From NCBI GenBank assembly GCA_002269645.1, contig NIVC01000112.1, positions 392,520 through 456,519 on the forward strand: a stretch of 64,000 nucleotides of DNA, given 5' to 3'. Position 1 is the stretch's first letter. Each line of letters opens with the position of its first letter. Below the pieces are notes generated by a model. The model was not told where the DNA came from and made no database searches. It saw only the letters and a program-made list of their open reading frames with translations. The translations under genes were made by a program, and so were the position numbers. Origin of the DNA: Macrostomum lignano (lineage: Eukaryota). Of the stretch, positions 6,311 to 60,380 are shown piece after piece.

Positions 6311-6327
6311 CTCAAGCCCAGTCCTAC

Positions 6328-6738: not shown

Positions 6739-6759
6739 CTGGAGGAATTGGGGGCGGAG

Positions 6760-6960
6760 GGTAAGACGGGTTAACAGAGGGTAAAGCGGGTTAACAGAGG
6801 GTTAAAAAGGTAAAGCGGGTTAACAGAGGGTAAAGCGAATAAGCAGAGTAAACACAGGTTAACATATAGGAAGGAAAGCGAGATTAGTGGATTAATATGT
6901 GAAAAAGCGGGTCAAAAAGAGGGCAAAGCGGGTAAAGAAAAGGAGGTAAAAACGGTTAGC
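6760..6960. repeat. ~20-bp degenerate repeat (gggttaacagagggtaaagc)n
   Basis: Tandem units immediately adjacent to the exon acceptor. Confidence 0.7.
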
Positions 6961-7103
6961 AGGTAAAAAATGGAAAGAAAACATAGACGGACAGACCCAT
7001 ATTACAATTAAAGAAACAGGAGCAAAGGCATGCCAAGGTCTGACAGGAAAATTTAAACCATAAAACAGAAGCCTTAATCAAGAGTAGACGAGAGGCGACT
7101 CAC

Positions 7104-7394
7104 CCTGGCCTTCAGTTCGGCCCGGCGCTCCTTGAACACCAGCTGCAGCGCGGCTTCGTTCTGTTCCATAGTCCGACGCAGCTGCTCCAGTTCGAGCTCC
7201 TTGGCTCTGACCGCCACGGCCAGTTGAATTTTCGACCGTCGGGGAGGCGGCCGCGCTTGTTCGGCGACGTCCGCGGCGGCGGCGGCATCCATCACGACGA
7301 TGCGACCGGGGCGACACAGCGGAGCCGCAGGCGTCGCGGAGGTCGCAGGCGATGCCAACCAGTCGACAGAGTGGGAAACGTTCGGCAGTGCGGG
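7104..7394 (-). CDS. LZTS: LZTS/Fez1-family protein, internal exon
   Basis: Donor AGG|gtgagt at 7103. Translates ...KELELEQLRRTMEQNEAALQLVFKERRAELKAR, which resembles the LZTS2 'ELQQLRDSLDENEA.MCQ.YEER' motif. The acceptor is uncertain: ccacag at 7395 is preferred, ctaag at 7443 is an alternative, and both are phase 0. Confidence 0.7.
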
Positions 7395-7419
7395 CTGTGG
7401 TGGGGGCGGAGCTTGCAAA

Positions 7420-8560
7420 TCAGCGGGTATCCCGGATGATTCCTTAGCGGGTATTTCCCATGCCCTGATTCTTCAGCGGGTATTCACCCTGATTCTTCAG
7501 CGGGTATTTCCCCTACCCAGATTCTTCAGCGGGTATCCACCCTGATTCTTCAGCGAGTATTTCCCATGCCCTGATTCTTCAGCGGGTATTTCCCATGCCC
7601 TGATTCTTCAGCGGGTATTTCCCATGCCCTGATTCTTCAGCGGGTATTTCCCATGCCCTGATTCTTCAGCGGGTATTTCCCATGCCCTGATTCTTCAGCG
7701 GGTATTTCCCATGCCCTGATTCTCCAGCGGGTATCCACCATAGATACTAAAAACATGTGTTTTTATTATCTGTGGTATCCACCCTGATTCTTCAGCGGGT
7801 ATTTCCCATGCCCTGATTCTTCAGCAGGTATCCACCCTGATTCTTCAGCGGGTATTTCCCATGCCCTGATTCTTCAGCGGGTATTTCCCCTACCCAGATT
7901 CTTCAGCGGGTATTTCCCATGCCCTGATTCTTCAGCGGGTATCCACCCTGATTCTTCAGCGGGTATTTCCCATGCCCTGATTCTCCAGCGGGTATCCACC
8001 ATAGATACTAAAAACATGTGTTTTTATTATCTGTGGTATCCACCCTGATTCTTCAGCGGGTATTTCCCATGCCCTGATTCTCCAGCGGGTATCCACCATA
8101 GATACTAAAAACATGTGTTTTTATTATCTGTGGTATGCACCCTGATTCTTCAGCGAGTATTTCCCATGCCCTGATTCTTCAGCGGGTATCCACCCTGATT
8201 CTTCAGCGGGTATTTCCCATGCCCTGATTCTTCAGCGGGAATTTCCCCTACCCTGATTCCTCAGCGAGTATTTCCCATGCCCTCATTCTTTAGCGGGAAT
8301 TTCCCCTACTCTGATTCCTCAGCGAGTATTTCCCATGCCCTCATTCTTCAGCGGGTATCCACCCTGATTTTTCAGCGGGTATTTCCCCTACCCAGATTCT
8401 TCAGCGGGTATTTTCCATGCCCTGATTCTTCAGCGGGTGTTTCCCATACCCTGATTTTTTAGCAGGTATTTCCCATGCCCTGATTCTTTAGCAGGTATCT
8501 AACCTGATTCTTCAGTGGGTATCTATTTGGATTACTCAGTGGGTATCTCCCTGGATTATT
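7420..8560. repeat. 29/21-bp minisatellite (cagcgggtatttcccatgccctgattctt)n with 3 interspersed tagatactaaaaacatgtg blocks
   Basis: Tandem units with higher-order structure. Confidence 0.9.
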
Positions 8561-8656
8561 CAGTTCAGACGGCAGCATCCTATAAAGTGTGCAAAGACCC
8601 CCTCCACAAATCATTCAGTGGCAACTCATTGAAATAAATTCAAAATCAAAATTGAC

Positions 8657-9043
8657 CTCATCTCCAGCAGCAATAGCCAAGTCGGCATGCACCGAACGCG
8701 ACATCAGAGCATTGCCGCAATAGTAATTGTTGGTCGATTCAGCATCACTGCACCCATCCCCGGATGCCAGACTCTCCTGATTGCGCCAGCTGCGTGCTTG
8801 AGCCCGAACTTGGCAGCCGCTGGCTCCTTCATCATGACACAGGCCAGGCTGCCTAGCCAAGCTTCCATAGCAACCAACACCAGACTCTGCTGTTAATTTT
8901 TCACCCGGCTTTTGCTTGGCTTTCTTCTGCCGAGAAGAGCCAGACTTTCTGCCTAGAAACAGTCTGGCTAACCGAGCCATTGAGGACTTGAGTGTGCCAG
9001 AAGAGCTCTCTTGTACACTCTGTCCTGCTGAACTAGCCGCCAT
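8657..9043 (-). CDS. Probable first coding exon of the LZTS-like gene (Ser/Gly-rich N-terminus)
   Basis: Strong acceptor tttttctgtcactttcag at 9062-9063, in-frame TGA upstream, then ATG at 9043. Donor GAG|gtcaat is weak but phase 0 and compatible with the next exon. No family motif is recognised in this exon. Confidence 0.55.
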
Positions 9044-9453
9044 TGCCAATCAATTAACTGGCTGAAAGTGACAGAAAAACAATATCATAGAAGCAAGAAA
9101 TATGAATTTATATGATTGTTGAAATTTAACAATCAACTAGTTGGTCTGTTAGTTGGGGGGAGAGCAGCTTAGTGTTAAATGCATCTGACTTTTGCAACAT
9201 GAACTTTTAGGTCTGATTCCATATATGGCCACATTTCATTGGGGCCATTACACAAAAATTGGCTTGGGGGTTATGCAATTCACACCCATGAGGGCCAACC
9301 CCAAGGCACAGAGATGTGCATATCTACCATAGTCCAGATCATGCTGGGTGCACGCCTGAACAAAAATTGAATAATTACAAATGCATGCCAAAAAAAATTA
9401 GTGCATACCCATTCTCAAAAATATGCTGGTGTAGCGACAATAAATGACCTTTT

Positions 9454-15916: not shown

Positions 15917-18900
15917 ACAACAACAACAACAGAGTACGCTGCCGGATCACAAAAGCAACGTCAGATGGCACGCTTCGAAGCCTGGGCGCGAACAAAGGCC
16001 GCACCGCCGGCAGAGTCCGGGGCGCCGGCGTCAGCCAGCAGACAGTCGACGTAGCGCCGTGTCCTCGCTTGTCCCCGCCGGTAGGGTGCCTGCAACGTAA
16101 GTAGCAGCACCTCCTGCACCGGCTCCGGACAGTAGGCCTCGGCGCGGATGACGTGGCCTGCCAGCTGGAGTCGCCGACGGCGCAGCAGATCGCTAGGACG
16201 GGCCAGGCCGGCGCGATTATAGAGCGCCGTGTTGGTGACTCGCTCGTTGCCGATCTTGAAGGCGGCGCGCAGCAGGCCAGCGTGCGCCGCGTCGACTTGA
16301 GCCTCGAGCGAGTCTGTCAGCGTCCAGGTCTCGGCGTTGTATAACAGGACGGTCTCGATCACCGCCTGGAACAGCGCCGCCCTCTGGCGGTCCGGTAGGG
16401 CCTCGGACTGCAGGACTGACCTTATAGAACGAAAGGCAGCCCAGGCAAGTCCTCGGCGACGCCGCAGATCCTCGCGAACGTCGGGAACCAGACCGCCGAG
16501 GTAGACGAACTGCTGACATCTTGGAAGCTCACTCGCCTGTCCGTCAGCGCCTCGGCAGAAGATTGCAGCCTCGGTGTCGTCCGGCACGCATAGCACGACG
16601 GTCTTCTGCGTGTTGACCACCAGGCCGACGCTCGCCGCAACGGCAACCAGCCTATCCAGCTGTCGTTGGGCGCCCTCGACGGTCGAGGACAGCAGGGCGA
16701 GGTCATCGGCGTAGCCAAGCACGCTGAGCCGTCTCTCCGGTTGGCGTCGACCCACACGTCGCCGCAGCAGGAAGCCGTCGTCGTTGGAAGGCAGAGCAGT
16801 CCGCAGCACCCAGTCAAGCACCAGAATAAATAGGAACGGCGCTAGCGTATCTCCCTGGAGCACCCCGGAGGATGTCTCGAAGAAATCCGATAGGCCGTCC
16901 GGTGTTGAGACAGCAGCCGTCGTGCCGTGGTACAGCGCCATGACAGCAGAAATCAGCAGCTCTGGCACGTTGTACGCACGGAGCACCTCTGGGAGCGCGT
17001 CCCTCACGACCGAGTCGAAGGCCTTCCTGAAATCGACGAAGATCAGGATTAGGGTCAACTGGCGGATGCGCGCCTCCTCGATGACTCGCCGAAGAGCCAG
17101 GATCTGCGTCACTGTGCCGCGATGGGGCCGGAATCCGTTCTGCTCAGGCCGCAGGTACGGGTCCAGCACAGGCTGTAGCCGCGATAGCAGCATGCGGTTG
17201 AACAGCTTCGCGGCGCAGGACTGTAGGCAGATGCCTCGATGCTCCTCGAGCTTGGTGGTGCCCGGCTTCTTTGGAATGGCGACGATGTGCGCCGTGGTCC
17301 ATTCGTTTGGCGCCACCTCACCGGAAAGCACGCGGTTCATCACTCTGGCGACCTCAGTGGCCACGCAGTGGATCCGCAGCGCCTCGGTGGGCACCTCGTC
17401 CGGACCAAGCGCTTTGCCGCCCGGCGACTGCCGAGCGAACTTCACAACGTCGGCTGTGCTGACTGGGGCAACGTTGAAGCTCTCCTCCGCCGGCAACGGC
17501 GTCTCCGGCGGCAGCCTCAGATTTTCTGGAAGCGGAGGGGGCGGCGCGTTGACAATGGCGGCGAAGAACTTGCGCAGCTCGTTCCTGCGCTCATCCGGAG
17601 TGTCGCCTGCCAGGTTGAGCGCAATGCGCCGCTTTCGCCCCGTCAGAGTGTTGATGACGGACCAGGCCACGCGCCCTCTGGCATCGGGCCCTGCGGCAGA
17701 GACGGCTTGGATGGCGTCATCGACAGCGGACTGCTGCCGCTGCAGGTAGACAGCCGCCAGAGCCTCCTCCGCCTCGCGAGTTTGCCGCCCACTCAGACGG
17801 AGCCTCTCCAGATCTTCCCTCGCTTCGTCGATCGCGGGGTCGTCCTGCCAGACCGGCTGCCCGCGCTGGGCCGGTCGCATCAGCGGGACTGCTTGCTCCG
17901 CAGCGGCTCGAACTGCAGCGCTCACCTCCGCGTACTCGGCTCCTCCACGCTTGTCGCCCAGCGCAGTGACAAAGGCACCGGCAAAGCGACGTCGCGTCTC
18001 GGCGTCCCTGAGCGCGCGGTAGTAGTGCCGCGGTGGCCGCTTTGGCGGACGGTAGAGCGGGTCCCGAAGCCGAAGGTCGCAGATGAGCAGCCGATGGTCG
18101 GACCGCAGAGCCAGCGGCGTAATGGTGCGGCAGTTGGTGACGCGGCGGCGCTCACGAAAGCGCACAAGCACGTGGTCGAGCTGTGCCAGCCTTCGCGTAG
18201 CGTTCCGGCCGCGCGCGTTCCTCCGCCTCCGCTTGCAGCCCACGAAGGTCGCGAGCCTGCCCGGTGACTTGCGGAATCTGGTGTTGGCCGACACCATGTC
18301 CTGTCTCTCCAGGAAGTCCTCTAGCGCTCCGGTGTTGCCATTCTCGCGCGCTGTCACGAACAGCGATCGCTCGGACCTACGCAGAACTGCGTTCAGGTCT
18401 CCGAGAATGACCACTGTGTCACGTTGCGCCATCTCCTCCACCCGCACCGAGAGTTGCTCGAAGAAGGCCTGAGCCTCATCGGAGCGGGTAGCAGGCGGCG
18501 CGTACGCGCAGAACAGGCGGGCGTTCCGGCCGCGAAGCCGGACGTCGACCCGAAGCAGCCGAGAAGACAGGGAGACGCAGCGACAGCTCTGCTGCAGCCT
18601 CGGTCCGATCAGCGCTCCAACTCCTCCACGGCCTCGCTCATCCGCTGAGGTGTACCAGAGTGTCCAACCGGCGCCCAGGTCCTCACAGTGAAGTCCGGGG
18701 TCGGCTCTGATAGACACCTCCTGTAGTGCGATGACATCACAGCTGAGGTCGAGTGCTAGCCTCGCCAGCAGCCCTCTCCGCCATGTGGCCTTGAGAGTGC
18801 GGCAGTTCAGCGTCCCGACCCGAAGCGTGCCCTCTGGTACGGCTGGGGCTCGGTGCTGGTGAGCCTCATGGTCCCCGGCGCCACCCGGAAGATCCAATTG

Positions 18901-19110
18901 GGCCAGCGCAGCAGCAGCTCGGCGGGCGGCACCACGTTGCCGACCTCGCCAGTTTCGCTCGCGACGGCGTTCGACTCGCCGACGCGCGCTCCGCTGCCCT
19001 CGCTTGGTCCTGCCGCATTTGGCCGCCGCAGCAGTTAAGCGCGGCTCTCCGCTCTCACCACGAGGAGGTAGCGGCATTTATCTGCACCGTGGTGCAAATA
19101 AATTAAGACA
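15917..19110 (-). mobile_element. Full-length RTE-clade non-LTR retrotransposon with 10-bp TSD (ACAACTTACA) and (GTT)n tail
   Basis: Direct repeat at 15907-15916 and 19111-19120. (CAA)n at 15917-15930 is the 3' tail on the minus strand. Single APE-RT ORF. Confidence 0.85.
15961..19077 (-). CDS. APE endonuclease + reverse transcriptase polyprotein (RTE-like), 1038 aa, intact
   Basis: APE motifs VGTLNCRTL, IALQE, GDLNA, QLDHVLV, SDHRLL. RT motifs EQNGFR, FVDFRKAFDSV, GVLQGDTLAPFLF, YADD, YLG. C-terminal LLYNAETWTLT and RRRLQLAGHVIR. Confidence 0.95.
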   Translation of the reverse strand: MPLPPRGESGEPRLTAAAAKCGRTKRGQRSARRRVERRRERNWRGRQRGAARRAAAALAQLDLPGGAGDHEAHQHRAPAVPEGTLRVGTLNCRTLKATWRRGLLARLALDLSCDVIALQEVSIRADPGLHCEDLGAGWTLWYTSADERGRGGVGALIGPRLQQSCRCVSLSSRLLRVDVRLRGRNARLFCAYAPPATRSDEAQAFFEQLSVRVEEMAQRDTVVILGDLNAVLRRSERSLFVTARENGNTGALEDFLERQDMVSANTRFRKSPGRLATFVGCKRRRRNARGRNATRRLAQLDHVLVRFRERRRVTNCRTITPLALRSDHRLLICDLRLRDPLYRPPKRPPRHYYRALRDAETRRRFAGAFVTALGDKRGGAEYAEVSAAVRAAAEQAVPLMRPAQRGQPVWQDDPAIDEAREDLERLRLSGRQTREAEEALAAVYLQRQQSAVDDAIQAVSAAGPDARGRVAWSVINTLTGRKRRIALNLAGDTPDERRNELRKFFAAIVNAPPPPLPENLRLPPETPLPAEESFNVAPVSTADVVKFARQSPGGKALGPDEVPTEALRIHCVATEVARVMNRVLSGEVAPNEWTTAHIVAIPKKPGTTKLEEHRGICLQSCAAKLFNRMLLSRLQPVLDPYLRPEQNGFRPHRGTVTQILALRRVIEEARIRQLTLILIFVDFRKAFDSVVRDALPEVLRAYNVPELLISAVMALYHGTTAAVSTPDGLSDFFETSSGVLQGDTLAPFLFILVLDWVLRTALPSNDDGFLLRRRVGRRQPERRLSVLGYADDLALLSSTVEGAQRQLDRLVAVAASVGLVVNTQKTVVLCVPDDTEAAIFCRGADGQASELPRCQQFVYLGGLVPDVREDLRRRRGLAWAAFRSIRSVLQSEALPDRQRAALFQAVIETVLLYNAETWTLTDSLEAQVDAAHAGLLRAAFKIGNERVTNTALYNRAGLARPSDLLRRRRLQLAGHVIRAEAYCPEPVQEVLLLTLQAPYRRGQARTRRYVDCLLADAGAPDSAGGAAFVRAQASKRAI

Positions 19111-21318: not shown

Positions 21319-21344
21319 GTGAGTGAGAGTCCGTCAGTCAGTCC

Positions 21345-22690
<1,346 letters not shown>

Positions 22691-27597: not shown

Positions 27598-28919
27598 ATG
27601 CCCAACCAAAAGCAGCACATTCAGCCTGCCATGCAGCAGTTGTATTTGCATAACTCCATCGCCCCACTTCCACAGACCTCAGCCGGGATGATCGCCAATG
27701 CCAATCAGCAGTGCCAGAAGAGGCCGGTGCCGCAGCCGCAGTCTCCAGCCGGCTCTGATGGTGTCGTCCACCAGGCAGCAACAAGGATCAGCAGTTGCGT
27801 GCCGCCCAAGAAGCGGCCTCGACTGCCGGAGTCACCGGAGTGCAGCGAATCCTTCGCTGTCGCCTCGCCGCCGCTGGACCTGACAGCGAAGCCTTTGCCG
27901 ACGCCCAGCCTGACGCCGGACCTGTCGCCGCTGCTGGCAGCTCACCAGCATTCTCAGTTGATGCTGCAGCTCAACCCATCGTCTTCAGTTGCTGGCCCGT
28001 CCGCCGACAGTCAATGGCAGGCAGCAGCCGCAGCTGCAGCGATGTACGCCCAGTGCCTGACGTCCTACCTCAGCTCCATCATGCCGCCGCCGCCTCCGCC
28101 GCGTCTGCTGCCGCCTGCGCCGCCGCCGCTGCCGACGCCTGTAGCCGAGGCTGCCCGGCCGAGCAGCGGCGAGACGGACTTCCGCTGCTCCTGCGGCCGC
28201 CGCTTCGCTAACCTTGTCGGCCTGACGGTGCACATGCGGGCCGCGGGGCACGGCGACTTCTCCGCCTCGACGGACGCCTTGGCGGCTTCCGCTGCTGTTG
28301 TCGAGCCGCCGCCGCGGCCGCCGAAGACAACGAGTCCGCCGGCCCGCGAGCAGCCCAAGCTGGTCCGCGGCCAGGACATGTGGATCAACTCGGAGACAGA
28401 GCAGACCAGGGAGATCCTGCGCTGCATCCGCTGCCGGCAAAGCTTCCGCACCCTGCCGGAGCTCACCATGCACATGGTGCGCAGCCGGCACTACGCCGAG
28501 ATCATCAGCAGCGCCGCTGATCCAGCGGCCGCGGCCTCTGGAACAGCAGCGGCGCTGAACCCTGCCGCACCGCCCCCAGCCCCAGCCTCTTTATCAAAGC
28601 CGCAGCCCGGGGACTCCCCCAAACAGCCGGCCTATCTCTGCCCGGACCTCCTGGCTCCGTCGGGCCCGACAACGCCGGCCGGTCTCGGCAACGGTGACTC
28701 CAATCCGCTGTACTGCCTGCAGCGGCTTGTCGACAAAACTGCCGGCTTCTCAGAAGCTCCGGCATCGTCGACAGCAGCGGCAGTTGCGGCATCGCCATCG
28801 GCGGCGTCCACTTCGTCGACCTCGGAGGCGGCATCCGTGATGGCGATCGCTAGCGAAGATCCGGCGGCAGTGTTCGACGAGCCGGCAGCAGCCCAGGCGT
28901 CTCCGTCGCCGCCGACGCC

Positions 28920-28950
<31 letters not shown>

Positions 28951-29217
28951 TCCCAGACGAAAAAGAAGATTCGCTGCCAGTTCTGCAGCAGACCGTTCGC
29001 CAATAAAGGCCAGGTGAGGCTGCACGTGAGCAAAGGCAAGTGCCCTGGTGGAGGCGGCGGCAGCGGCAGAGGTGGCCGGGGATCTGCGGCGTTGCAGCAG
29101 CAGCAGCAGCAGCAGCAACAGCAACAGCAGCCTCCAAGCAGCCTGGCTTTCTTCGAGTATTTCTTCGGTGCAGGAGCAGCAGCTGCGGCAGCCGGTACCA
29201 AGCCGATCTGGTGGTGA
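27598..29217 (+). CDS. tsh: Teashirt/Tiptop-family C2H2 zinc-finger transcription factor, 539 aa, single coding exon
   Basis: KLVRGQDMWINSETEQTREILRCIRCRQSFRTLPELTMHMVRSRHYAEII matches the tsh/tio signature 'KLVRGQDVWLGKG.EQTRQILKCMWC.QSF'. Also a PLDLT CtBP-type motif (27871-27885), NPLYCLQRLV, and a C-terminal finger CQFCSRPFANKGQVRLH. An in-frame TAA lies directly before the ATG. Confidence 0.9.
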
Positions 29218-46425: not shown

Positions 46426-46506
46426 GTGAGTCTGTCGCGTTGCCATGGTGATTGTCATGGGTCTACGAAAATCGAATTCAATCGAATTCTCGTGGAAATT
46501 CCGCAG

Positions 46507-47267: not shown

Positions 47268-47297
47268 GTACGTTTTTCTTGCGCTCTTGTTGACCTG

Positions 47298-47897
47298 TCC
47301 CGTCTCCCTGCACCCGTCTCCCTGCACCCGTCTCCCTGCACCCGTCTCCCTGCACCCGTCTCCCTGCACCCGTCTCCCTGCACCCGTCTCCCTGCACCCG
47401 TCTCCCTGCGCCCGTCTCCCTGCACCCGTCTCCCTGCACCCGTCTCCCTGCACCCGTCTCCCTGCACCCGTCTCCCTGCACCCATCTCCCTGCACCCGTC
47501 TCCCTGCACCCATCTCCCTGTGTACCCATCTCCCTGCACCCTTGTCCCTGCATTATCTCCCTGCGTTATCTCCCTGCATTATCTCCCTGCATCATCTCCC
47601 TGCGTTATCTCCCTGCCTATACCTCCCTGCATCGTCTCCCTGCACCCGTCTCCCTGCATCATCTCCCTGCATCATCTCCCTGCACCCGTCTCCCTGCACC
47701 TATCTCCCTGCATCATCTCCCTGCACCCGTCTCCCTGCACCTATCTCCCTGCACCCGTCTCCCTGCACCCGTCTCCCTGCATTATCTCCCTGCATCCATC
47801 TCCCTGCCTATATCTCCCTGCATCCATCTCCCTGCCTATATCTCCCTGCATCCATCTCCCTGCCTATATCTCCCTGCATCCATCTCACTGCCTATAT
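47298..47897. repeat. 14-bp minisatellite (cctgcacccgtctc)n
   Basis: Intron 4 of SIN3; interrupted at its 3' end by a SINE. Confidence 0.93.
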
Positions 47898-48269
47898 TTA
47901 TTATTATTATTTATTTAGAGGCAGGGGGGTTGTGTGCAACCTGGCGCAATTTAAGCGTCATTGGCACACAACCGGCGAGAGGCATTACTGCCCATTCCGC
48001 CGACTCCCCTGAGCAGGCATACAAGCGCGCGGATACGTTACGCAGGCACACACTCACACAGGAGTGTACAGCGGCCCTAACTTTATCAATTGTTAGGCAT
48101 GTACACTTCACTGCGCCTTGGGGGGGGGGTTGGCTCTCAAGGCCGTTAATTGCACGAGCGAGCCAAGCCAAGATTCCAATCCAGCCCCAAATTAATGTGG
48201 CTGCACTTGGAATCGAGCCTGGGTCGCGGCACACCAGAGCAGCTGCGCTACCGCTGGGCTACGCCCCCC
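47898..48269 (-). mobile_element. tRNA-derived SINE, ~370 bp, (TAA)n tail, 12-bp TSD CACTGCCTATAT
   Basis: The minus strand starts GGGGGGCGTAGCCCAGCGGTAGCGC...GGCTCGATTCC (A/B boxes) and ends taaataaataataataataa. TSD at 47886-47897 and 48270-48281. Confidence 0.88.
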
Positions 48270-48358
48270 CACTGCCTATATCTCCCTGCATCATCTCACT
48301 ACACCCTTCGCTAGCCATAAATCTGCAGTGCATTTATCTCCCCCAAAACTGCTCATAG

Positions 48359-48639
48359 GTGCTAAACGACAGTTTGGTGAGCTTCCCCAGCTGGTCAAGC
48401 GAGGACACGCAGTACGTGAGCTCCCGTAAGAATCAATTCGAAGAGGCCTGCTACCGAGTCGAGGACGAGCGCTACGAATTAGACATGGTGCTAGCAGTGA
48501 ACTGCTCAGCAATCAGAGCTCTGGAGGCTGTACTCAAACGGTTGCACAGGCTGCCCAGCCAGGAAGAGCAGGCTCATTATCGGCTGGGCGATGACTTAGG
48601 TGCCAGCTCCGGTGTGCTTCTGCGCAAGGCCATACAGAG
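48359..48639 (+). CDS. SIN3: SIN3 exon 5 (HDAC-interaction domain)
   Basis: ctcatag|GTG ... CAG AG|gtgcgc; [42 protein letters not shown]. Confidence 0.96.
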
Positions 48640-48734
48640 GTGCGCTTGTAGCTTTTGTTTTTAAATAGCATTCGCAGTGCAGAGATTACTATGAGTCCTT
48701 TCCTTTGCGCTGAACCCTGAAGTCTTTAGACACT

Positions 48735-50035
48735 ACTATAAGAATCGTCCTTAGATCTACTATGAGAATCGTCCTTAGATCTACTATGAGAATCGTCCTT
48801 AGATCTACTATGAGAATCGTCCTTAGATCTACTATGAGAATCGTCCTTAGATCTACTATGAGAATCGTCCTTAGATCTACTATGAGAATCGTCCTTAGAT
48901 CTACTATGAGAATCGTCCTTAGATCTACTATGAGAATCGTCCTCAGATCTACTATGAGAATCGTCCTTAGATCTACTATGAGAATCGTCCTTAGATCTAC
49001 TATGAGAATCGTCCTTAGATCCATCCTGAGAATCGCCCTTAGATCCATCCTGAGAATCGCCCTTAGATCCATCCTGAGAATCACCCTTAGATCCATCCTG
49101 AGAATCGCCCTTAGATCCATCCTGAGAATCGCCCTTAGATCCATCCTGAGAATCGCCCTTAGATCCATCCTGAGAATCGCCCTTAGATCCATCCTGAGAA
49201 TCACCCTTAGATCCATCCTGAGAATCGTCCTTAGATCCATCCTGAGAATCGCCCTTAGATCCATCCTGAGAATCGCCCTTAGATCCATCCTGAGAATCGC
49301 CCTTAGATCCATCCTGAGAATCACCCTTAGATCCATCCTGAGAATCGCCCTTAGATCCATCCTGAGAATCACCCTTAGATCCATCCTGAGAATCGCCCTT
49401 AGATCCATCCTGAGAATCACCCTTAGATCCATCCTGAGAATCGCCCTTAGATCCATCCTGAGAATCGCCCTTAGATCCATCCTGAGAATCGTCCTTAGAT
49501 CCATCCTGAGAATCGCCCTTAGATCCATCCTGAGAATCGCCCTTAGATCCATCCTGAGAATCGCCCTTAGATCCATCCTGAGAATCGTCCTTAGATCCAT
49601 CCTGAGAATCGCCCTTAGATCCATCCTGAGAATCGCCCTTAGATCCATCCTGAGAATCACCCTTAGATCCATCCTGAGAATCGTCCTTAGATCCATCCTG
49701 AGAATCGCCCTTAGATCCATCCTGAGAATCGCCCTTAGATCCATCCTGAGAATCGCCCTTAGATCCATCCTGAGAATCGCCCTTAGATCCATCCTGAGAA
49801 TCGCCCTTAGACCCATCCTGAGAATCGCCCTTAGATCCATCCTGAGAATCGCCCTTAGATCCATCCTGAGAATCGCCCTTAGACCCATCCTGAGAATCGC
49901 CCTTAGATCCATCCTGAGAATCGCCCTTAGATCCATCCTGAGAATCGCCCTTAGATCCATCCTGAGAATCACCCTTAGATCCATCCTGAGAATCGCCCTT
50001 AGATCCATCCTGAGAATCGCCCTTAGACCCTTAGA
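48735..50035. repeat. 24-bp minisatellite with two variant blocks switching at 49021
   Basis: gagaatcgtccttagatctactat, then gagaatcgcccttagatccatcct. Confidence 0.97.
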
Positions 50036-50637
50036 TATGCTTTACAATGCAACCTCTAAATCGTCTTAAATCCTACCCTGAGAATCGCCTCAGTTTTTTG
50101 CTCAGATATCTGGGAATTTCGTATTCCGAAAGCGCATTTTTTAATTCGAATATTTCCCACATAAAACGTGGCCGTGACTCACCGCCACCCGCTTAATATT
50201 TGATGAAGAACATCTCCGGTCTAACACATTCTCAATTGGGTCTCTCTTTGGTCGCCTGGTAACGATAAACTCGATGCCGCGCGATCATTTTCAATATATG
50301 ATTCCGCTATTCCAAGCCTGTATGCTGCTGTCGCGAGACAAAATGAGACTGTCTAAAATCCGCTAGTGTTAGCCTGATAAATGGGGAGCTTCATATTTTG
50401 CATAGAAGCATTTTCTGCTCGTTCTTCTTCAGCCAAATCGAATTTAAACCCGAATCGAATTTCAGATAAGCCTGCTGGCATTTCCGGTAGCTGCTTTCGA
50501 ATTGAGTTAGAATTTATTTAGTAAAACAAGCTTCATAGTTTACCGTTTCAAAGCCTCAGTTTACATTATAGTAGAAACAATGCGATTAGTTCAGGATAGC
50601 ACAGGCAATTAGTGCGGTTTGCTTTTCAGTATACATC

Positions 50638-50643
50638 TTTATT
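50638..50643 (-). terminator. Candidate poly(A) signal AATAAA of the Nav gene
   Basis: TTTATT on the + strand, about 350 nt downstream of the Nav stop. Confidence 0.4.
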
Positions 50644-50993
50644 TAAATATATACGGTAAGTAGGGAATCAGTGTAAATATAGCTGGTCTGAGCAAGCAGC
50701 TTATCAGTTGACAGATATTGCAGTTTGAGGCATAATCATGTCATTATAGGCATACAGTGAGCAGTAATTTGTCGTTTTATCCTATTGTGTTTGTTTTATA
50801 GATAGAGGACATTTAGCCTGTAATCGTTTATAATTTCATTTGGGTTTGCAAATTTTGTTATGCTGAAGCAGAAAAGCCTTTTGCGTGTTTGGGAGCAAGC
50901 AAATGTGCTTTTCATATTGTTAATTTCTAAATTGCAAGCAATATGATAGTAACAGTGTTTTATAGCATAATTAGATTCTTTCACCTCGCGAAG

Positions 50994-53900
50994 TTAAGCC
51001 TTCCTTTCAACAGCTTCGCTGCCTGCGGCTGCCAGCCTTCTCTCTTTGCATTTTGCCGCGTAGGCTCGAACGTATCGCGTTATGACGTTGGCTGCATATT
51101 TCTGCCTCTGCCGCTCCATGGTATTGCTAATGATGATTCTCTCGTCTTTGAGCTTGCCGCCGCCTTTAGGTTTGAGCGCCGACAGTTCCTCTTCGTCGGC
51201 CGCTGTGCCCAGAAAGTTTCGTGTCAAAGCGTCCAACAGATCGACGCAGAAGATGGTGTCGCCTTTGCAGATTGGCACGCTCAGCGTGGCCAGCTTGATC
51301 TTGTTGGGCTGCGGCAGCTGCAGCGGCGGCTCCAGCTCGTCTAGGAATTCGTACACCTGGTCTACGGCTATGAATCCCTTCGCCTTGGGATCGTAGGATT
51401 CCCATTTTTCGTAGAACAAATCAAAATCCTCCTGGTTAAGCCCTGCTGAACGTCTTCGGTAGCCTGGCTGAAGTTCTCTAGAATGACGGCGATGTACATG
51501 TTGATGATGACTAGGAAGCTGATGACCAGGTAAGAAATGAGGAACACCACCGCAATGGCGTAGTTGCCGCAGTCGCTGTGCGGCTTCTTATTCGGATTGC
51601 AATCGGGTTCCTCCTCATTGATGAGTCCGTCTAGGACGCTGTCCCAGCCAGCGGATGTGCTCAACTGAAACAGGACCACCATGCCGCTAGGGAAAGTCTC
51701 GAAGTTGAATATCTCGTCAATTCCGCTTCGATGACGAACGTGGCTAAAAAACGATATGCCTACTATGCTGTAGATGAACATGATCATGAACAGTAGCAGG
51801 CCGATGTTGAACAGAGCCGGCAGCGATACGAATAGCGAGAATAGCAGTGTCCGAATGCCGCGGGCAGACTTCACTAAGCGAAGAACTCGGCCAACGCGAA
51901 ACACTCGAACCACTCGTATCATAGTTGGCGGTATAGGAAGCCTTACCATGATGTCCTCAATAGCCCAGGTGAGAATGCTTAGCACAACGATAACAAAGTC
52001 GAACATGTTCCACGCAAATTTGAAGTAGTACCAACGCTGGGCGAGTAGCTTCATCACGCACTCTCCGGTGAATATAACAATGAAAAATCGGTTGATTTGC
52101 TCTACCGCGTCGTTGAATGCTTCCGATTGATTGTGGTGCTCAATACACATAACTATGGTGTTAAGCATGATGAATACCATGATTGCTATATCAAACTTTT
52201 GATCGTTAATCACCTTAAAAAAGAATTGAGGAATTCGTAGCTTCGGCTTTGGTACTGGTTTCTGCGGAGCCGTACTGCTCATCTTCTTCATTGCTTTATA
52301 GTAGCGCTTTTGGTCTTCCGTCATGAACAGCTCCACTGAACCGCCTGCTCTCTTCTTTTGCACGTTGAAATTGTCTATTATGACACCGATGAATAACTTC
52401 AGAGTGAAAAACGATCCGAATATGATAAATAGGACAAAGAACAGGTACATTGATGTGCTTGCGTCTCTGATTGGTTGATTGTTAGGGCCTGAAATAGAAA
52501 GATTTCTGTAATTGAATTCCTGTTTTTGCTTAACTTAATGATCCAACTGCAAAAGTTCCGTATCGCTTACCTGTTATGTCCACAGCGTCAGCAATAATTG
52601 GAATCCAGCCTTTGTAGGTAGCAATTTGAAACAATGCCAAGTAACCATTTAAAAAGTTGTCGAAGTTAATCCTTGAATTCTCCCAGCTGACGTTATGAAA
52701 TGCGGCTGCCATGGCTTCGCATGCCTCTTTATTGGGCACTAAATCAGCCGAGACTCGCTCGTTGTTGCTGTCGACGCACTTGTAGAATTGGCCTCCAAAC
52801 AGCTGCACTCCCATTATGCTGAATATAAGCCAAAATACTAGGCACACGAGCAGAACGTTAAAGATAGACGGAATAGCTTGAATCAGTGCATTGACGACAA
52901 CTTTCATGCCTTCCCATCGGCTGACTGCTCGTAGTGGTCTCAGAGCTCTCAGCGTTCTCATGGCCTTGAATGCTCCCATATTTTGGCCCGATGCGCCCCC
53001 GACAAGATTCAGGACTAGACTAAAAAGCGCAACGTTTACTATGACAAAATCCAACCAGCACCAGGCGTCTTTGAAGTACTTTTTTAATCCGAAGGCGAAC
53101 CATTTTACGACCATTTCAAAGGTAAATATGATCGTGAAGCATTTGTCCATGTATTCAAGGACTAACTTTAGCTTAGGTCTCTTTGGTAGATTTACATCCT
53201 CCAGTGTTAAAGTGACGCTGCTCAGCGCAATCATAAGGATGATAAACATTTCAAAATACTTGTGTTCAACCAGCTTGTATGCGCGGCAGCGAAATCCCCA
53301 CCAGATCTTTCCAAGATTGGTGTTGTCGCACAGCTGCACAGCCCTGGGGCAGAAATCCATGAGCTGCTTTGGCAGGCAATCCTCCGGCGCATCCCAGTAC
53401 TGTATGTCCACTTCGTTAATCTCCGGCTCTTCATCGAATTTTGGCGACAGCTTGTCTTCGATCGCAATGGCGAAGTGACCCGCCGGGAACACTTTATTTT
53501 GGTTGGCGCCAGCCGCATCTGAAAGAATGCTTGCTTCGTTTATGTCCTTAAATACCATTTGGCTTGCGGCGATTGTCACATTTTCCATTATGTATGTGCC
53601 ATGCTGTTTTAATGGAAACCTGCTATCCAACTGAATGCTTATTCTGTCTTTGCCGCTGGCTGGTTTCGCTTTGTCCTCGCTGCTGTCATCGGCGTCGTCA
53701 CTTTCGAATAGGTCATTGTCGTTGTAGCTGCGGGTGCATGCCTTGCCTACTAAGTACCAAAACAGTCGCTTGATATGAATCCTCGACCAGACTATAAATC
53801 TGTTTATCCTGTCTATGGCCTCCTGCAGTTTGTTTACTTCTTCCTCTTCCTCGCGTCGTTGCAAACTTTCGGCTCCGAAACTGCTCAGTAGAAGCGCCAG

Positions 53901-56877
53901 GAAAAGGCTCAGTACCACTAGACTGGCCAGAATGTTTGTCAGAAGAAAAAATGGTACACAGATATATCCGTTGACATTAATACAGCCCCACATGCTCTCG
54001 ATCCATTCACCGCATAGTACGCGAAATACAATCATGAAGCTGTGTGTGAAATCTTTAAAATTCCACCTCGGATAGTCGCCCTTAAATTCCGGATAGAGAG
54101 TTTCATTCTTATATAGTGCATAGTTTTCACCGAACAGCTGCATGCCTACCACGGCAAAGATGAATATTATAATGCCCAATACGAACACTAAGTTTCCTAG
54201 CGCGCCCATTGTTCTAGCGATGATTGCGAATAAAAGATTCATTGTCTGCCAGGATTTCGCCAGTTTAAAAACCCTTAGAAGTCGAAAGGCGCGTAGGATG
54301 GAAAGACCTTGAACATTTTGCAGTGTTAGTTCTACGAAACTTAGAACTACAATCGTGAAGTCAAATATATTCCAGCCGTCCTTGAAGTAAACTTGCGGCT
54401 TCATTGCGATTAGTTTGCATACTGCTTCAATCCCGAAAGTGGCCGTAAAAAATAGATTTGCGTTGCTTAAAATTTCTTTAAATGTCGGCGTATTAGATGG
54501 GACATCAAGGGCCATGCAAGCGGTGTTAACGAGTATGCATAACGTAATGAAAAGCTCTACGAATGGGTCCAGGATGAAGTAACTGACGTACTTCTCCAAC
54601 ACCTTCCAGCAGTAGCAGCATTCCCAACTGTAGCAAAATTTTTCAAGAAACAGGTGCTTGTAGTGTTCGAACTTCTTTTCCTTCGGTCTGCACTCAACTT
54701 CCTCCTTTTCTGGCTTTGTTGTTGCTGCATCTTCGATCAGTGTTTTCAGTACCACCACATCATTCATTTCGACTTCCTGACCAGCTGGTGGCTGCGAGGT
54801 AGTTTCACGCAATGTACGTTGACTCTGAGTTTTTCTAATACCTAGTAGCTCTTTGTGGTCCAATACCCCTGGCTGTTTAGTTTCCTCTTGCAACAGAATT
54901 TCAGGTATCGGTTTGTCCGAACCGTTTCTTGTGCACATCAGGATGTCTTTGTACTTTCGCGATTCCAGAGGTGACTTGCTGTTTGCTATCTTTCCAAGAA
55001 GATCCGTCTTTGTTGGCTGCCTGTTAGCGAAAGCTGAAAACAAAGCAAAGTATTTAAACTTGCTGTTGAAACTATCTCTTTGCTCCCTCGCGCTGGCGTC
55101 CGAAGCTGGCGTGTGGGCTGCCGAATCATCTGCATATGGAAAGCTGATGGTCTCCAGTACATTCACTTGCGTGCAGTCGCTTGGTTTCCAGTGAAACCGA
55201 TCCTTGTGCTTAATGCACGGAGATCCTGGCAGACTGACACTTTTTGATTTATGCTTCAAAAAGTGCTTAGAAATGTAGCTGCTGATTGGCGTTCGCACTG
55301 GGCCGCCTTCAATTTTGTCAGAACGAATGCTCAACTTGTCCAAACTTTTCTTTGCACTTTCCAACGGTATTCCCGCCGCTTTGTAAATGTCTGTAATGCT
55401 GAGACAGCTCACTTCATCTGAGAAGCTTTTCTCAATTGAAGCCTCTTTCACTTGTTCCTCCTGTTCACGTCTCTCGTCTTCCTGCTTTCTGGCTGCTTCT
55501 TCCTCTTCCTCGTCCAGTTTGTCCTGTTTTCTGACTTCGTCATAAGCCATAGCAACTATGGCTAGGATTACGTTAATCAGAAAGAAGGAACCCATCATTA
55601 TGACTAAGACGAAGAACACCACGTGAGGTGTCCCATTAGTTCGAATGATTAATTGGTAAAGACTCTCCCAAGCGTCTTGAGTCATTAAACGAAAGGCGCA
55701 CAGCATCGACCAGCCAAAGTTATCAAAGTTGGTGTAGCCAAAGTTCGGATTTACCTTGTCCGTTCGAAAGCATTCAAAGCCTTCGGGACATTGTTGTCCT
55801 AGGTCACTATTTAGGGAGCAAACTCGCAGTTCGTCTGGATATCCCAGCCAGTTGCTTTCGTTGTTGTGGTGGATCTTTCGAACTTGATCTTTCAGGTCTT
55901 TAAGCTCATCACTCGTTAGTTCTGATGCGTTGCCCATGTATTCGTAGTCAAGGTATTCAGTAAAGTTAAATTTACTGACGCATTTTTGAAGAAGTGTTCC
56001 TTTATATACTTGTAATCCGACTAGGGCAAAGATACTAAGGACAAATATTGTAAGGATTCCAACGTCTCTGAGTCTCTTCACGGCCTCCATTAGCGCCCCA
56101 ACAATGGTCTTCAGTCCTGGTACAGTGGTTACCGTTTTAAGCGCACGCAGCACTCGAAGAGACCGAAGCGCACTAAGATTGCCCAGTGTTGGTACGAAGA
56201 ACATGATGTAAGCCAGTCCTATAACTATAAAGTCAAGCCAGTTCCAAGCGTCGCGCAGATACGTAAACTCCGTGAGTATTAAGCCGCGCGATATAGCCTT
56301 GATAGTGGCTTCGGTTGTATAGATTGCCGTGAAGGTGTGCAGATAATGAGACCAACAGTACGAGCATAGAAAAAGCCGGATGAGTCAGTATGCGGATTGC
56401 TACCCGCCTGATCGGATTGAAAGGCGACAGAAGAAACAGCGCATTGGTTGCTGAAAACCGAAAGATCGTCTTGTCTCGTGAAACTACCACGAAGGTGAAC
56501 TTATCTCCGTAATAATCGTCGATATCTTCAAGAAGTGCGCCACCCAGCCTCTTGGCTGAAAACTTGTCGCTCAGAGCTGGCGGCAATTTCATGCCGGCGG
56601 CAAGCTTTGGATTCGGCCTGCGCTCGTCCGACGTTGTCGTTGTTGGCTTTGTCGGACTGTGCTTCGCCTCGTCCGCGGCCTCGCCAGTCTCATTGAGGCC
56701 GTGTTTGCACACTCTGCCAGCAAGAGGAGTCGCCGCATTCGCGTGAGTGTGCGCGGCGCCAAAAGCCGATGCGTGCGCGCTAAGCGCCTGGCCTAGAAAA
56801 GTGCCCTCCTCTTGCCGGCGTACGATCCGCTCCAAGGACTGTTTAGTAAACGGTCGGAACGGTTGCTCTTCCTCCAT
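50994..56877 (-). CDS. Nav1: Voltage-gated sodium channel alpha subunit (Nav1/para-like, ~1930 aa), nested antisense in SIN3 intron 5; one 82-bp intron and two frame lesions
   Basis: Four S1-S6 repeats with Arg-rich S4s. Filter D(55674-76)/E(54006-08)/K(52611-13)/A(51650-52). Inactivation motif [11 protein letters not shown] (52322-30), EF-hand-like and IQ-like C-terminus, and para-like linker motifs (SLPGSP, YADDS, DVVVL). Segments are 56350-56877, 52571-56336, 51436-52488 and 50994-51434. Confidence 0.93.
52489..52570 (-). other. Only intron of the Nav gene (82 nt, phase 1, DIII pore loop)
   Basis: ACA G|gtaagcg...tttctatttcag|GC CCT restores ...[25 protein letters not shown]. Confidence 0.92.
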
Positions 56878-58254
56878 TTCGGAAGCAACAGTTGAAAGAT
56901 CTAGCTAATTCTCTATTCAATCTGAGCTCATTTTTTCGGTTTAAAAAATTTGATATTATAAGTAAATTCCTGCTCTTTGAAACGCTCTGATGACATTCAG
57001 TAGTGGGAGTTTATAGCCCGCTTACTGTTCCCCCCTCACTCGCTGTGCGGTTTCTGCTTCACCCCTTGGCTGACTACCGGAGTATCTGCATTCTCTGCCG
57101 CCTGCCAAGATGCGGCTCTCTTCCAATTGGTCACTGCCCCCATTCGGATAAGAGTCAGAGCGTTGAAGCAACCATAGGATCTCATACGCTATCAGCAGCG
57201 TTGCTGAGCCCCGTCCTCTACTGTCTCTTGGTCAGCAACCACAGTCTTCACATTCTCCCTGTCTTTTTCTCTGCTGCTATCGCCTTGCTCTTTCTCTCGA
57301 ATCACCAAAGCGGCCCCTGTTTAGTTGGGCTCTCCCTGGACCAGCAAGCAACATCTGGTTGGCCTCCTCCCAATTCGCTGTCGCTCTGCACCCCCGGCCT
57401 TAATTCATCCGGAGCTGGGCCATCTCGCCCTCTACCCGAGCTGAGCAGCCAACCACCCCGTATATCGCACCCTGCATACATTATGAGCTCCGGATTCCAG
57501 ATTGCTTTCTGGGAGGAACCCTCCCCTTCTAGACACTGGTTGTTCTTGCCTATCCTTCTCATCTTAATCCACCAGTTTAGGCGAGTTTGCCCGGTCTGGG
57601 CGGGTATCGATAGCTGGGTCGCCTGTTCGCCCTCTGCTCTAGCATGGTGCGGGAGAGAGACGGGGGCTGCCGGGAAAATTGCAGTTTGCATTTTTTTTCC
57701 TGGCTTCATCCCCATGCCGCTGCTCCCCAATGCCCGCATGCGCCAATGCCAGAAGCGCATATAGCTACTGCGCCTTTAATCGAAGCGCCTCGGCTCAGGG
57801 GGATATGCCGCCGCTTTTCCTTGTCAGCGCGTCCCCTTGCAAATGGCTTAGGCCTTGTGTTTGGCTTCTCTCAGAGCGCACGCTATGAGGATAAGAGTCA
57901 CTTCTGCCATGGGCCACCGCTTTGGCTATTTAGCCCGACAACTCCATCCTGGCGTTCTCTTGCCACGGCCATTCAAGCTTTTAATTCGTTCTCGTGAACT
58001 ACTATAATAAGGCTTTTTACAGATCGAAACTGTATTGGAAATTAGGGTTGTCCCGAATGCGCTGAACTCTGATTCTGACACAGTCAGCCACTTGTGGTAC
58101 TTTTAGCGCCCTAGAAACAAGAATATCTTTTCGAAATTCAAAATTTTATTCGCCTCCATTCATTATGTCCCCCGTCTGCTCCCTATTTCCGGCCTCTGCG
58201 TATATCTGCCTTCACGAGACACGTCCTAAAAATCCGTATTGTCCTTTATATGCA

Positions 58255-59090
58255 TCCCCCTCGATGCATCCGCCCCTTCATGGATTCGCCTCTTCATGCA
58301 TCCGTCCCTTCAAGCATCCGCCCCTAGATGCATCCGCCCCTTCAAGCATCCGTCCCTTCAAGCATCCGTCCCTAGATGCATCCACCCCTTCATAAATCCG
58401 CCCCTAAATGCACCCGCCCCTTCATGAATCCGCCCCTAGATGCATCCGCCCCTGTATGTATCCGCCCCTTCGATGCATCCGCCCCTTCCATGCATCCGCC
58501 CCTTCCATGCATCCGCACCTTCCATGCATCCGCCCCTTCGATGCATCCGCCCCTTCGATGCATCCGCCCCTGTATTATCCGCCCCCTCGATGCATCCGCC
58601 CCTTCATGGATCCGCCTCTTCATGCATCCGTCCCTTCAAGCATCCGCCCCTAGATGCATCCGCCCCTTCAAGCATCCGTCCCTTCAAGCATCCGTCCCTA
58701 GATGCATCCACCCCTTCATAAATCCGCCCCTAGATGCATCCACCCCTTCATAAATCCGCCCCTAAATGCACTCGCCCCTTCATGAATCCGCCCCTAGATG
58801 CATTCGCCCCTAGATGCATCCGCCCCTGTATGTATCCGCCCCTTCGATGCATCCGCCCCTTCCATGCATCCGCCCCTAGATGCATCCGCCCCTAGATGCA
58901 TCCGCCCCTTCGATGCATCCGCCCCTTCCATGCATCCGCCCCTTCCATGCATCCGCCCCTTCCATGCATCCGCCCCTTCGATGCATCCGCCCCTTCGATG
59001 CATCCGCCCCTGTATTATCCGCCCCTTCGATGTATCCGCCCTTCGATGCATCCGACCCTTCGATGCATCCGCCCCTTCGATGTATCCATC
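58255..59090. repeat. 17-18-bp minisatellite (gatgcatccgccccttc)n
   Basis: 3' part of SIN3 intron 5. Confidence 0.93.
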
Positions 59091-59181
59091 CCTGTCTATA
59101 TCCACCCACAAGCTTAACCTGCAATTCATTGGCTATATATTGCCTCATCCTTCTAATACTACCGCTGCATTGCAATTGCAG

Positions 59182-59956
59182 AATCTATGGCGAACGCGCC
59201 CAGGGCATCATCCAGGGTCTGCAGGACAGCCCGGCAGTGGCGGCGCCGCTCATACTGAAGCGCCTGCGCGCCAAACAAGAAGAATGGCGCGACGCGCAGA
59301 AAGCATTTAATCGAGTGTGGCGCGAACAGACCGAGCGATGCTATTTAAAAAACCTCGACCATCAGAGCGCCAACTTCAAGCAGACGGACCAGAAACAGCT
59401 GCGCACCAGGGCGCTGGTCACGGAGATCGCCGGCCGGTCTGGCAGCGGCGCCTGCGGCCAGCTCCAGCTGCCCATGCCGGCCGACCCGACCGTCCGCAAA
59501 GACGGCGTCGACCTGCTCATTCACCACGTCAAGCGGCAGAGCTACGCTAAAGACGAGAAATCCGCCGTCAAGCGGCTTCTTCGTCGATGGCTTCGCGACC
59601 TCCTGCTGGAGACTCGGCTGCCGTTGAGCGACGACGAGGGCAGCGACGGCGAGGATCCCGACGTTGACAGCGCGTCTGCAGCCGCCGCTCCGGCTCTGAT
59701 CGGCAACAACAACATCTACGCCCTGCTGCGGCTGTACCAGCTGCTGTGCAAGCGCCTGGCCGCCGCCAAATCCGCCTGCGATGCCGCCGCCGCCGCTGCA
59801 ACTTCCGGCGACTCCACCGGATCGGACAGCACCGCCGTGGCGCTGCGGCTGCGGCAGCCGCCGGCTGTGCGACCGGACCGGCTGTACGAGCACTTCATGC
59901 ACCAGCTGGTGTCCCTGATGGACGGCGCCGTGGACTCGGCTGTGTTTGAGGACCAG
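59182..59956 (+). CDS. SIN3: SIN3 exon 6 (HID C-half and downstream region)
   Basis: caattgcag|A ATC completes R-IYGERAQGIIQGLQDSPAVAAPLILKRLRAKQEEWR...LKNLDHQSANFKQTDQK. Its phase matches exon 5 across 10.5 kb. Donor CAG|gtctgt. Confidence 0.96.
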
Positions 59957-60026
<70 letters not shown>

Positions 60027-60077
60027 CTGTCTGTTAGTGTCTGTCTGTCTGTCTGTCTGTCTTAGTGTCTGTCTTAG

Positions 60078-60148
<71 letters not shown>

Positions 60149-60159
60149 CTGTCTGTTAG

Positions 60160-60240
<81 letters not shown>

Positions 60241-60292
60241 GCCTGTCTGCCTGTCTGCCTGTCTGCCTGTCTGTCTGCCTGTCTGCCTGTCG

Positions 60293-60332
<40 letters not shown>

Positions 60333-60380
60333 GTCTGTCTGTCTCTGTCTGTCTCTGTCTGTGCTGTCTGACTGTCTGCC
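59957..60380. repeat. (GTCT)n microsatellite beginning at the splice-donor GT
   Basis: Carries ttagt interruptions like the array at 21345-22690. Confidence 0.95.

Follow-up and report, generated by a model that had tools for sequence, protein, structure and literature searches.

A Nav1 gene with one intron

A 64,000-nucleotide (nt) stretch of the genome of the free-living flatworm Macrostomum lignano (contig NIVC01000112.1, positions 392,520 to 456,519 of the forward strand; hereafter the window) was analysed. The gene on its minus strand from position 56877 to 50994 is the M. lignano orthologue of the DEKA-type sodium channel gene Nav1/para. A single intron was found in its coding sequence, and 12 of the 13 intron positions shared by the orthologues of a tapeworm and a nemertean were empty. 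These data support a massive and precise loss of ancestral introns. The explanation favoured here, with a confidence that falls just short of even, is an old loss in the macrostomid lineage, mediated by complementary DNA (cDNA) and without relocation of the gene.

The coding sequence (about 5.8 kb in a gene of 5.9 kb) starts with the ATG at 56877 and ends with the stop codon at 50996-50994. It consists of four open-frame pieces, A to D (Table 1), which together give a product of about 1930 residues. The Pfam Ion_trans family was matched by three stretches of piece B and two of piece C, and the polypeptide contains four six-helix domains (DI to DIV, with helices S1 to S6). The match to Na_trans_assoc between DII and DIII was sub-threshold (26.5 bits against a curated cutoff of 35.6). 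The protein was aligned over its full length with the Nav1 proteins of eight species. The selectivity filter residues were D in TQDAWE, E in CGEWIE, K in ATYKGW and A in TSAGWD, all in invariant or nearly invariant columns, and the fast-inactivation motif of the III-IV linker was LFM, aligned with GGSLEMFMT of other species. All top matches in a protein search were Nav1/para; the first five were M. lignano models named 'sodium channel protein', followed by the Nav1/para proteins of a nemertean, molluscs, annelids, insects and Echinococcus at 44-57% identity. The gene resembles bilaterian Nav1/para (Drosophila para, vertebrate SCN1A-11A, Echinococcus, Tubulanus) in its four domains, DEKA filter, LFM-type triplet and GPHH/IQ-type C-terminus, but it differs in having 1 intron instead of 26-31, no U12 intron, at least three paralogue groups and two breaks in the reading frame.

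A single 82-bp GT-AG intron had been named in the preliminary description of this DNA, and it was found at 52570-52489. Its context (ACAG/GTAAGC...TTTCAG/GCCCT) places it within the glycine codon of DAVDIT-G-PNNQP. The intron has to be removed by splicing, since it contains an in-frame stop and has a length not divisible by 3; its removal restores the DAVDIT-G-PNNQP sequence common to all Macrostomum models. An alternative acceptor inside the intron was rejected because it breaks the frame. The intron falls in alignment column 1709, which also holds a phase-0 intron in Echinococcus and Tubulanus; the Macrostomum intron is in phase 1 of the same codon, 2 nt upstream of the ancestral position. 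The preliminary description had mentioned an intron of vertebrate Nav genes near this site; that orthologues have one there is borne out by both species, in which it lies no more than 2 nt away. This orthologue intron bounds a conserved 54-nt exon on its 3' side, and exons of 138, 108 and 271 nt follow in Echinococcus and Tubulanus. Vertebrate Nav genes share a 54/138/105/271-nt exon series. The simplest reading would be that the 82-nt intron is ancestral and was retained, its splice sites having shifted by 2 nt. Its identification with the ancestral U12 intron, whose slow splicing might have accounted for the retention, was rejected, as the 82-nt intron is of U2 type (GTAAGC) and the orthologues carry ordinary GT-AG introns at this place.

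Intron positions compared with those of the orthologues

Intron maps were obtained by mapping the exons of the Echinococcus granulosus and Tubulanus polymorphus loci to their annotated proteins and projecting them onto one alignment. The gene structures compared were those of the window locus, Echinococcus and Tubulanus, and the Macrostomum paralogues were included as proteins only. The Echinococcus gene has 32 exons and 31 introns. The Tubulanus gene has 24 exons from residue 130 onwards and at least 3 upstream, which gives at least 27 exons and at least 26 introns. Both orthologues are therefore rich in exons, as had been claimed beforehand (25-30 exons).

Thirteen intron positions coincided in column and phase between Echinococcus and Tubulanus. 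Being common to a tapeworm and a nemertean, these positions predate the flatworms. One of them is occupied in Macrostomum and the other 12 are empty. At each of the 12 lost sites the Macrostomum row was continuous, with no gap within 8 columns on either side. Such gapless joins suggest a cDNA intermediate, this precision being expected of cDNA-mediated loss. The surviving intron lies at 74% of the coding sequence and its neighbours were lost on both sides, with no visible 3' bias. The search of the literature on intron loss in Macrostomum or on the structure of its Nav genes returned nothing relevant.

The U12 site, which immediately follows VHP where DI S1 begins, is also empty in Macrostomum. 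In Tubulanus polymorphus it holds a U12-type AT-AC intron (locus positions approximately 5928-9277; donor ATATCCTT, branch site TTCCTTAAC, acceptor AC). The annotated Nav1 protein of Echinococcus granulosus was observed to lack DI S1 (HPYPFQMV--TFTVFY, around exons 4-5), exactly where an AT-AC intron would be situated. Probably nothing has really been lost here, and the annotation failed at an intron without GT-AG ends.

Macrostomum Nav1 models and the age of the loss

The five M. lignano models were A0A1I8HQ99 (P0001; 96% local identity to the window gene) and A0A1I8HUE9 (P0002; 90%), both from UniProt, and A0A1I8JLI5 (P0003; 74%), A0A1I8G7J9 (P0004; 73%) and A0A1I8I8L5 (P0005; 71%). In a neighbour-joining tree of 1001 ungapped columns, built without a Nav2 or Cav outgroup, the Macrostomum sequences formed one clade (100% bootstrap), which was joined with Echinococcus Nav1 in a flatworm clade (100% bootstrap). 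Three groups of DEKA paralogues were present in Macrostomum in this tree: the window gene with P0001 and P0002, P0003 alone, and P0004 with P0005. No substitution was found between the window gene and P0001 outside the zones of insertion or deletion, and P0001 would most simply be the same gene in another assembly. P0002 is the model of a homeologue, with a handful of true amino-acid differences from the window gene.

Both P0001 and P0002 contain wrong-frame stretches, which are off-frame translations of the window DNA and are followed by skips of about 30 codons. One such stretch was found in P0001 (HTSWLNT) and two in P0002, and the window sequence is intact at all of these places. The two models are therefore unreliable as protein sequences. 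Their defects have the pattern that would be left by a gene predictor working on contiguous coding DNA ridden with insertions and deletions, and not on a multi-exon locus. One of the wrong-frame stretches of P0002 spans the site of the ancestral intron that follows DFVIVN. The P0002 DNA is therefore contiguous there too, which suggests that the loss took place, at the latest, before this homeologue diverged.

Breaks in the reading frame

The preliminary description had presented a continuous coding sequence with one intron. This did not hold, as the frame is broken at two further places (lesions 1 and 2 in Table 1), and the window sequence as it stands cannot encode a full channel. At lesion 1, about 20 codons (AIICNCVFMAQNSSSEAVEY) of all other Macrostomum copies are replaced by 16 nt, and half of DI S1 is absent. 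P0001, P0003, P0004 and P0005 all read LLAIICNCVFMA.NSSSE.VEYTFTAIY at this place. The lesion is best read as a gain of 2 nt and a loss of 46 nt, the deletion probably having occurred between two 'ac' dinucleotides (microhomology). The missing codons were not encoded elsewhere in the window, and a hidden S1 exon elsewhere in it was rejected on this ground. At lesion 2 the window reads 'aaccagg' where the other copies imply 'aacccagg' (VQQGLTQEDFD); every aligned sequence covering the site reads QGLTQ or QGLTP, then DDF, EDF or DEF.

No signature of an old pseudogene was seen in the window gene, which has no substitutions relative to P0001 and no stops. An assembly error is judged somewhat likelier than a true lesion for both breaks, since P0001 and P0002 carry different frame errors of their own and high error rates have been published for the assemblies. 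In the PacBio assemblies of M. lignano, error-free bases make up only 32% (ML2) and 64% (Mlig_3_7), and not all transcripts mapped to them retain intact open reading frames (PMC5730564). The absence of missense decay relative to P0001 and the homopolymer nature of lesion 2 both support an error.

The breaks might instead be real, in a redundant homeologue or allele of a functional and equally intron-poor gene, whose decay would have begun after the recent whole-genome duplication. The net loss of 44 nt with its 'ac' microhomology resembles a true deletion and not a homopolymer miscall. In addition, M. lignano is described as a hidden polyploid in which the large chromosome is present in extra copies, which would relax selection on each copy (PMC5730564; PMC10468722). 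However, the window gene does not differ from P0001 by a single amino acid outside the lesions, the other models have their own, different frame errors, and a change in homopolymer length such as lesion 2 is typical of long-read consensus errors. Real lesions are a serious alternative, though less likely than an assembly error.

The same breaks, of which there would be three if lesion 1 is a +2/-46 nt change, could also mark a dead retrocopy, made very recently from a functional multi-exon gene that underlies P0001. The identity of the protein to P0001 elsewhere would agree with a recent copy, and P0001 lacks VQKK beside an ancestral intron site, which could hint at a real intron there. A young copy should show a poly(A) tail and target-site duplications, however, and neither is present. 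The retained intron has good splice signals at an ancestral site, the wrong-frame stretches and skips of P0001 and P0002 point to contiguous coding DNA and not to a multi-exon locus, and near-identical blocks are duplicated in the assemblies themselves (180 Mb with at least 95% identity; PMC5730564). A recent retro-pseudogene is therefore very improbable.

Intron density and nesting within SIN3

Low intron numbers are characteristic of the genus. M. lignano has 3-5 introns per gene and a mean exon length of 721 nt (PMC5730564); for M. cliftonense and M. hystrix the corresponding figures are 5 introns and 788-858 nt (PMC10468722). In animals, exons are usually several times shorter than this. 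At these published densities, a coding sequence of 5.8 kb would be expected to hold approximately six to eight introns, and Nav1 has 1. When Nav1 is set against SIN3, the gene that surrounds it in the window, and against the genome mean, the genus-wide trend explains part of its intron poverty but not all of it, and Nav1 is an outlier in intron number even within its own genome. Short introns of some 80 nt belong to the normal repertoire of the genome, as illustrated by the SIN3 intron at 46426-46505.

The entire Nav1 gene lies antisense within a 10,542-nt intron of SIN3, a nesting that was absent from the preliminary description. The host intron is supported by its product: after splicing, the full Sin3_corepress domain was recovered with 110.8 bits, compared with 17.5 bits for the unspliced fragment, and the spliced product aligned with residues 388-597 of human SIN3B without a gap across both junctions. 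No tandem-repeat array was found in 50028-58263, whereas such arrays abound elsewhere in the window, and the claim that the Nav1 coding sequence is free of satellites was thereby confirmed.

A falsely intronless gene could arise if a cDNA or transcript contaminated the assembly or was mis-joined in it. The very long uninterrupted coding stretches (3.77 kb) and the absence of the satellites that are so plentiful in other parts of the window are what such an artefact might look like. However, the 82-nt intron is present unspliced and there is no poly(A) tract. Approximately 1 kb of unique non-coding DNA separates Nav1 from the satellites on either side, and the gene stands between consecutive SIN3 exons with intact splice sites and protein continuity. 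An artefact of this kind is hardly credible.

Origin of the intron-poor gene

Under the favoured explanation, the Nav1 gene of the macrostomid lineage would have shed essentially all of its approximately 26-31 ancestral introns by precise removal mediated by reverse transcriptase and cDNA. In this lineage, prone to intron loss, cDNA would have recombined with the resident gene, perhaps more than once. One short ancestral intron would have been kept, between the old 54-nt and 138-nt exons, with its splice sites slid by 2 nt. The loss would be old, preceding the recent genome duplication of M. lignano, and would carry to an extreme the pattern of few introns and long exons seen across the genus; the gene would not be a recent retrocopy. 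Nav1 would now be transcribed from its own promoter inside the SIN3 intron, on the opposite strand. The frame breaks would stem from errors in the long-read consensus, or from very recent damage to one copy among several redundant ones, and would not mark an old pseudogene.

Several observations tell against this explanation. Nav1 has 1 intron in 5.8 kb, compared with at least 5 introns in SIN3 and approximately one per 0.6-0.9 kb of transcript in the genome. The phase of the 82-nt intron differs from that of the ancestral one, and it is possible that the intron was gained independently at a CAG/G proto-splice site. Antisense nesting in a SIN3 intron gives the gene the look of an inserted (retroposed) copy. 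As regards the frame breaks, consensus errors do not typically take the form of a net deletion of 44 nt, and the S1 stretch affected by lesion 1 is abnormal in P0002 as well.

Two of these points bear on an alternative in which Nav1 is an ancient semi-processed retrogene. A partly spliced Nav1 pre-mRNA, still carrying one intron, would have been reverse-transcribed by a long interspersed nuclear element (LINE) into the SIN3 intron. The copy would then have taken over, the multi-exon parent being lost, or it would have founded the Nav1 family of Macrostomum, and the poly(A) tail and duplications would have decayed. The position of the whole gene antisense inside SIN3 favours such an insertion, and its intron density, much lower than in SIN3 and than the genome average, is in keeping with it; a single event would be simpler than many as a cause of the seamless removal on both sides of the retained intron, and an intact LINE endonuclease and reverse transcriptase frame in the same window indicates that the machinery exists. 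However, no run of 7 or more A on the gene strand was found in the 966 nt past the Nav1 stop, and no target-site duplication beyond chance was detected: the longest direct word shared by the flanks was 11 nt, with 0.36 expected, with one copy approximately 800 nt before the ATG and the other approximately 280 nt past the stop. In addition, no multi-exon parent was identified among the Macrostomum protein models, GC3 (the guanine-plus-cytosine content, GC, at third codon positions) is only slightly below that of the neighbouring genes, and the nesting may be secondary. An ancient retrogene is conceivable but rather unlikely. The survival of an intron at an ancestral site fits both in-place loss and a retrocopy, and the 12 empty sites of the 13 are equally compatible with either.

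The preliminary description had proposed either a retroposed, partially processed copy or wholesale intron loss mediated by reverse transcription. The precise and wholesale nature of the loss was upheld by the seamless joins at 12 of the 13 sites; retroposition was not, given the lack of a poly(A) tract and of a target-site duplication. It had also argued from base composition. The coding sequence is indeed less GC-rich (0.45-0.46) than the SIN3 and tsh exons with which it was compared (0.57-0.67). As evidence of origin this is weak, since the difference mostly reflects amino-acid composition: GC at second codon positions (GC2) is 0.30-0.35, the signature of a hydrophobic protein, and the gap in GC3 is small (0.51-0.68 compared with 0.62-0.76 in the neighbours). 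GC3 was accordingly rejected as a sign of foreign or retroposed origin, the small difference being largely compositional.

Comparison with known systems gave partial likenesses. Nav1 resembles semi-processed retrogenes in the near-total absence of introns, in the one intron at a parental position and in its location in the intron of an unrelated gene, but differs from them in lacking a poly(A) tract, a target-site duplication and an identified parent. With the Fink model of cDNA recombination it shares the exact, in-frame removal of many adjacent introns in a lineage with reduced intron number. Unlike the 3' bias of the classical model, the Macrostomum losses lie on both sides of a survivor three quarters of the way along the coding sequence, and SIN3, within the same 20 kb, kept several introns. 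Lineage-wide intron loss mediated by reverse transcriptase has occurred in Oikopleura, nematodes, dipterans and hemiascomycete yeasts. Nested intronic genes are commonly antisense, as is Nav1, which lies wholly in the SIN3 intron and, at 5.9 kb and 1948 residues, is unusually large for a nested gene. The nesting of Nav1 in an intron of another gene was not found described in the literature search.

Consequences for channel diversity

Nav1/para genes are textbook examples of conserved, intron-rich genes, in which alternative and mutually exclusive exons tune excitability and a rare U12 intron has been kept. With one constitutive intron, the M. lignano gene has no alternative or mutually exclusive exons of the para or SCN type. 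The loss of para-style alternative splicing, suggested in the preliminary description, thus follows from the gene structure, as a single intron leaves no room for mutually exclusive exons. Channel diversity in M. lignano may be supplied by the three or more Nav1 paralogue groups instead, which suggests that paralogues can substitute for splice isoforms.

A Nav1 gene with a single constitutive intron in a free-living flatworm model means that the intron-rich architecture can be discarded. It is improbable, but would be of consequence, that the whole Nav1 family of Macrostomum (all three DEKA groups) derives from a single semi-processed retrocopy in the SIN3 intron that replaced a gene of approximately 30 exons. 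If so, the splice-isoform diversity of the main action-potential channel would have been swapped for gene duplication, and the lineage would be a natural experiment on the dispensability of para-type alternative splicing. Gene-specific intron loss is already a known phenomenon, and the present case is one gene in an error-prone assembly of a polyploid, so that its interest is that of a specialist subject, to which the nesting in SIN3 adds. For M. lignano workers, a compact channel gene of 5.9 kb is easy to clone or edit. The public Nav models of M. lignano, and the Echinococcus model at DI S1, should be used with caution because they hold frame or annotation errors.

SIN3 and other features of the window

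The coordinates of the Nav1 and SIN3 features are given in Table 1. SIN3 has at least 5 introns in the window; at least one of these is unmapped between 44.7 and 45.8 kb, and more follow further downstream.

Table 1. Coordinates of the Nav1 gene, its frame breaks and the surrounding SIN3 features in the window
Feature	Position	Strand	Description
Nav1 piece A	56353..56877	-	N-terminus to first DI S1 residues; ATG-initiated open frame; identical to M. lignano P0001
Nav1 lesion 1	56337..56352	-	16 nt in place of about 60 nt (DI S1 and S1-S2 linker); net -44 nt; frameshift
Nav1 piece B	52571..56336	-	DI S2 to DIII pore loop; 3.77 kb unbroken, 1254 codons
Nav1 intron (only one)	52489..52570	-	82 nt; GTAAGC...TTTCAG; U2-type; phase 1
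Nav1 piece C	51436..52488	-	DIII S6, III-IV linker with LFM gate, DIV S1-S6; Pfam Ion_trans
Nav1 lesion 2	51434..51435	-	1-nt deletion in C run; frameshift
Nav1 piece D	50994..51433	-	C-terminal cytoplasmic domain and stop codon; Pfam GPHH
SIN3 intron	46426-46505	+	80 nt; GTGAGT...CCGCAG; apparent in-frame stop between two open reading frames
SIN3 intron	47268-48358	+	
SIN3 exon upstream of host intron	48359..48639	+	Second half of HDAC-interaction domain; ends LLRKAIQ-AG, then GT
SIN3 host intron	48640..59181	+	GT...AG; phase 2; holds Nav1 and two satellite arrays
Satellite in host intron	48741-50027		24-nt unit; flanks Nav1
Satellite in host intron	58264-59087		16-nt unit; flanks Nav1
SIN3 exon downstream of host intron	59182..59960	+	IYGERAQ... 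to start of Sin3a_C; after TTGCAG, A-ATC-TAT
SIN3 intron	59961 to ~60425	+	After ...VFEDQ

The SIN3 intron after VFEDQ opens directly with a (GTCT)n microsatellite (59957-60378), so that the first repeat unit supplies its GT donor. Another, much longer (GTCT)n array was found at 21329-22674. The LINE-type open reading frame at 15964-19077, on the minus strand, runs for 1038 residues without interruption, has a GC content of 66% and encodes an Exo_endo_phos endonuclease and an RVT_1 domain; it is possibly an active element without long terminal repeats and a source of reverse transcriptase. A teashirt-like (tsh) C2H2 zinc-finger gene at 27598-29214, on the plus strand, is a single frame of 539 codons with a GC content of 67% and long runs of Q and A. 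The coiled-coil fragments at 7077-9049 on the minus strand, which had been called LZTS, lie between satellite arrays and had no Pfam match. Among the sequences related to Nav1, fragments of approximately 680 residues from the rotifer Rotaria magnacalcarata were found on contigs of 3.9-7 kb, which hints that rotifer Nav genes may be intron-poor too.

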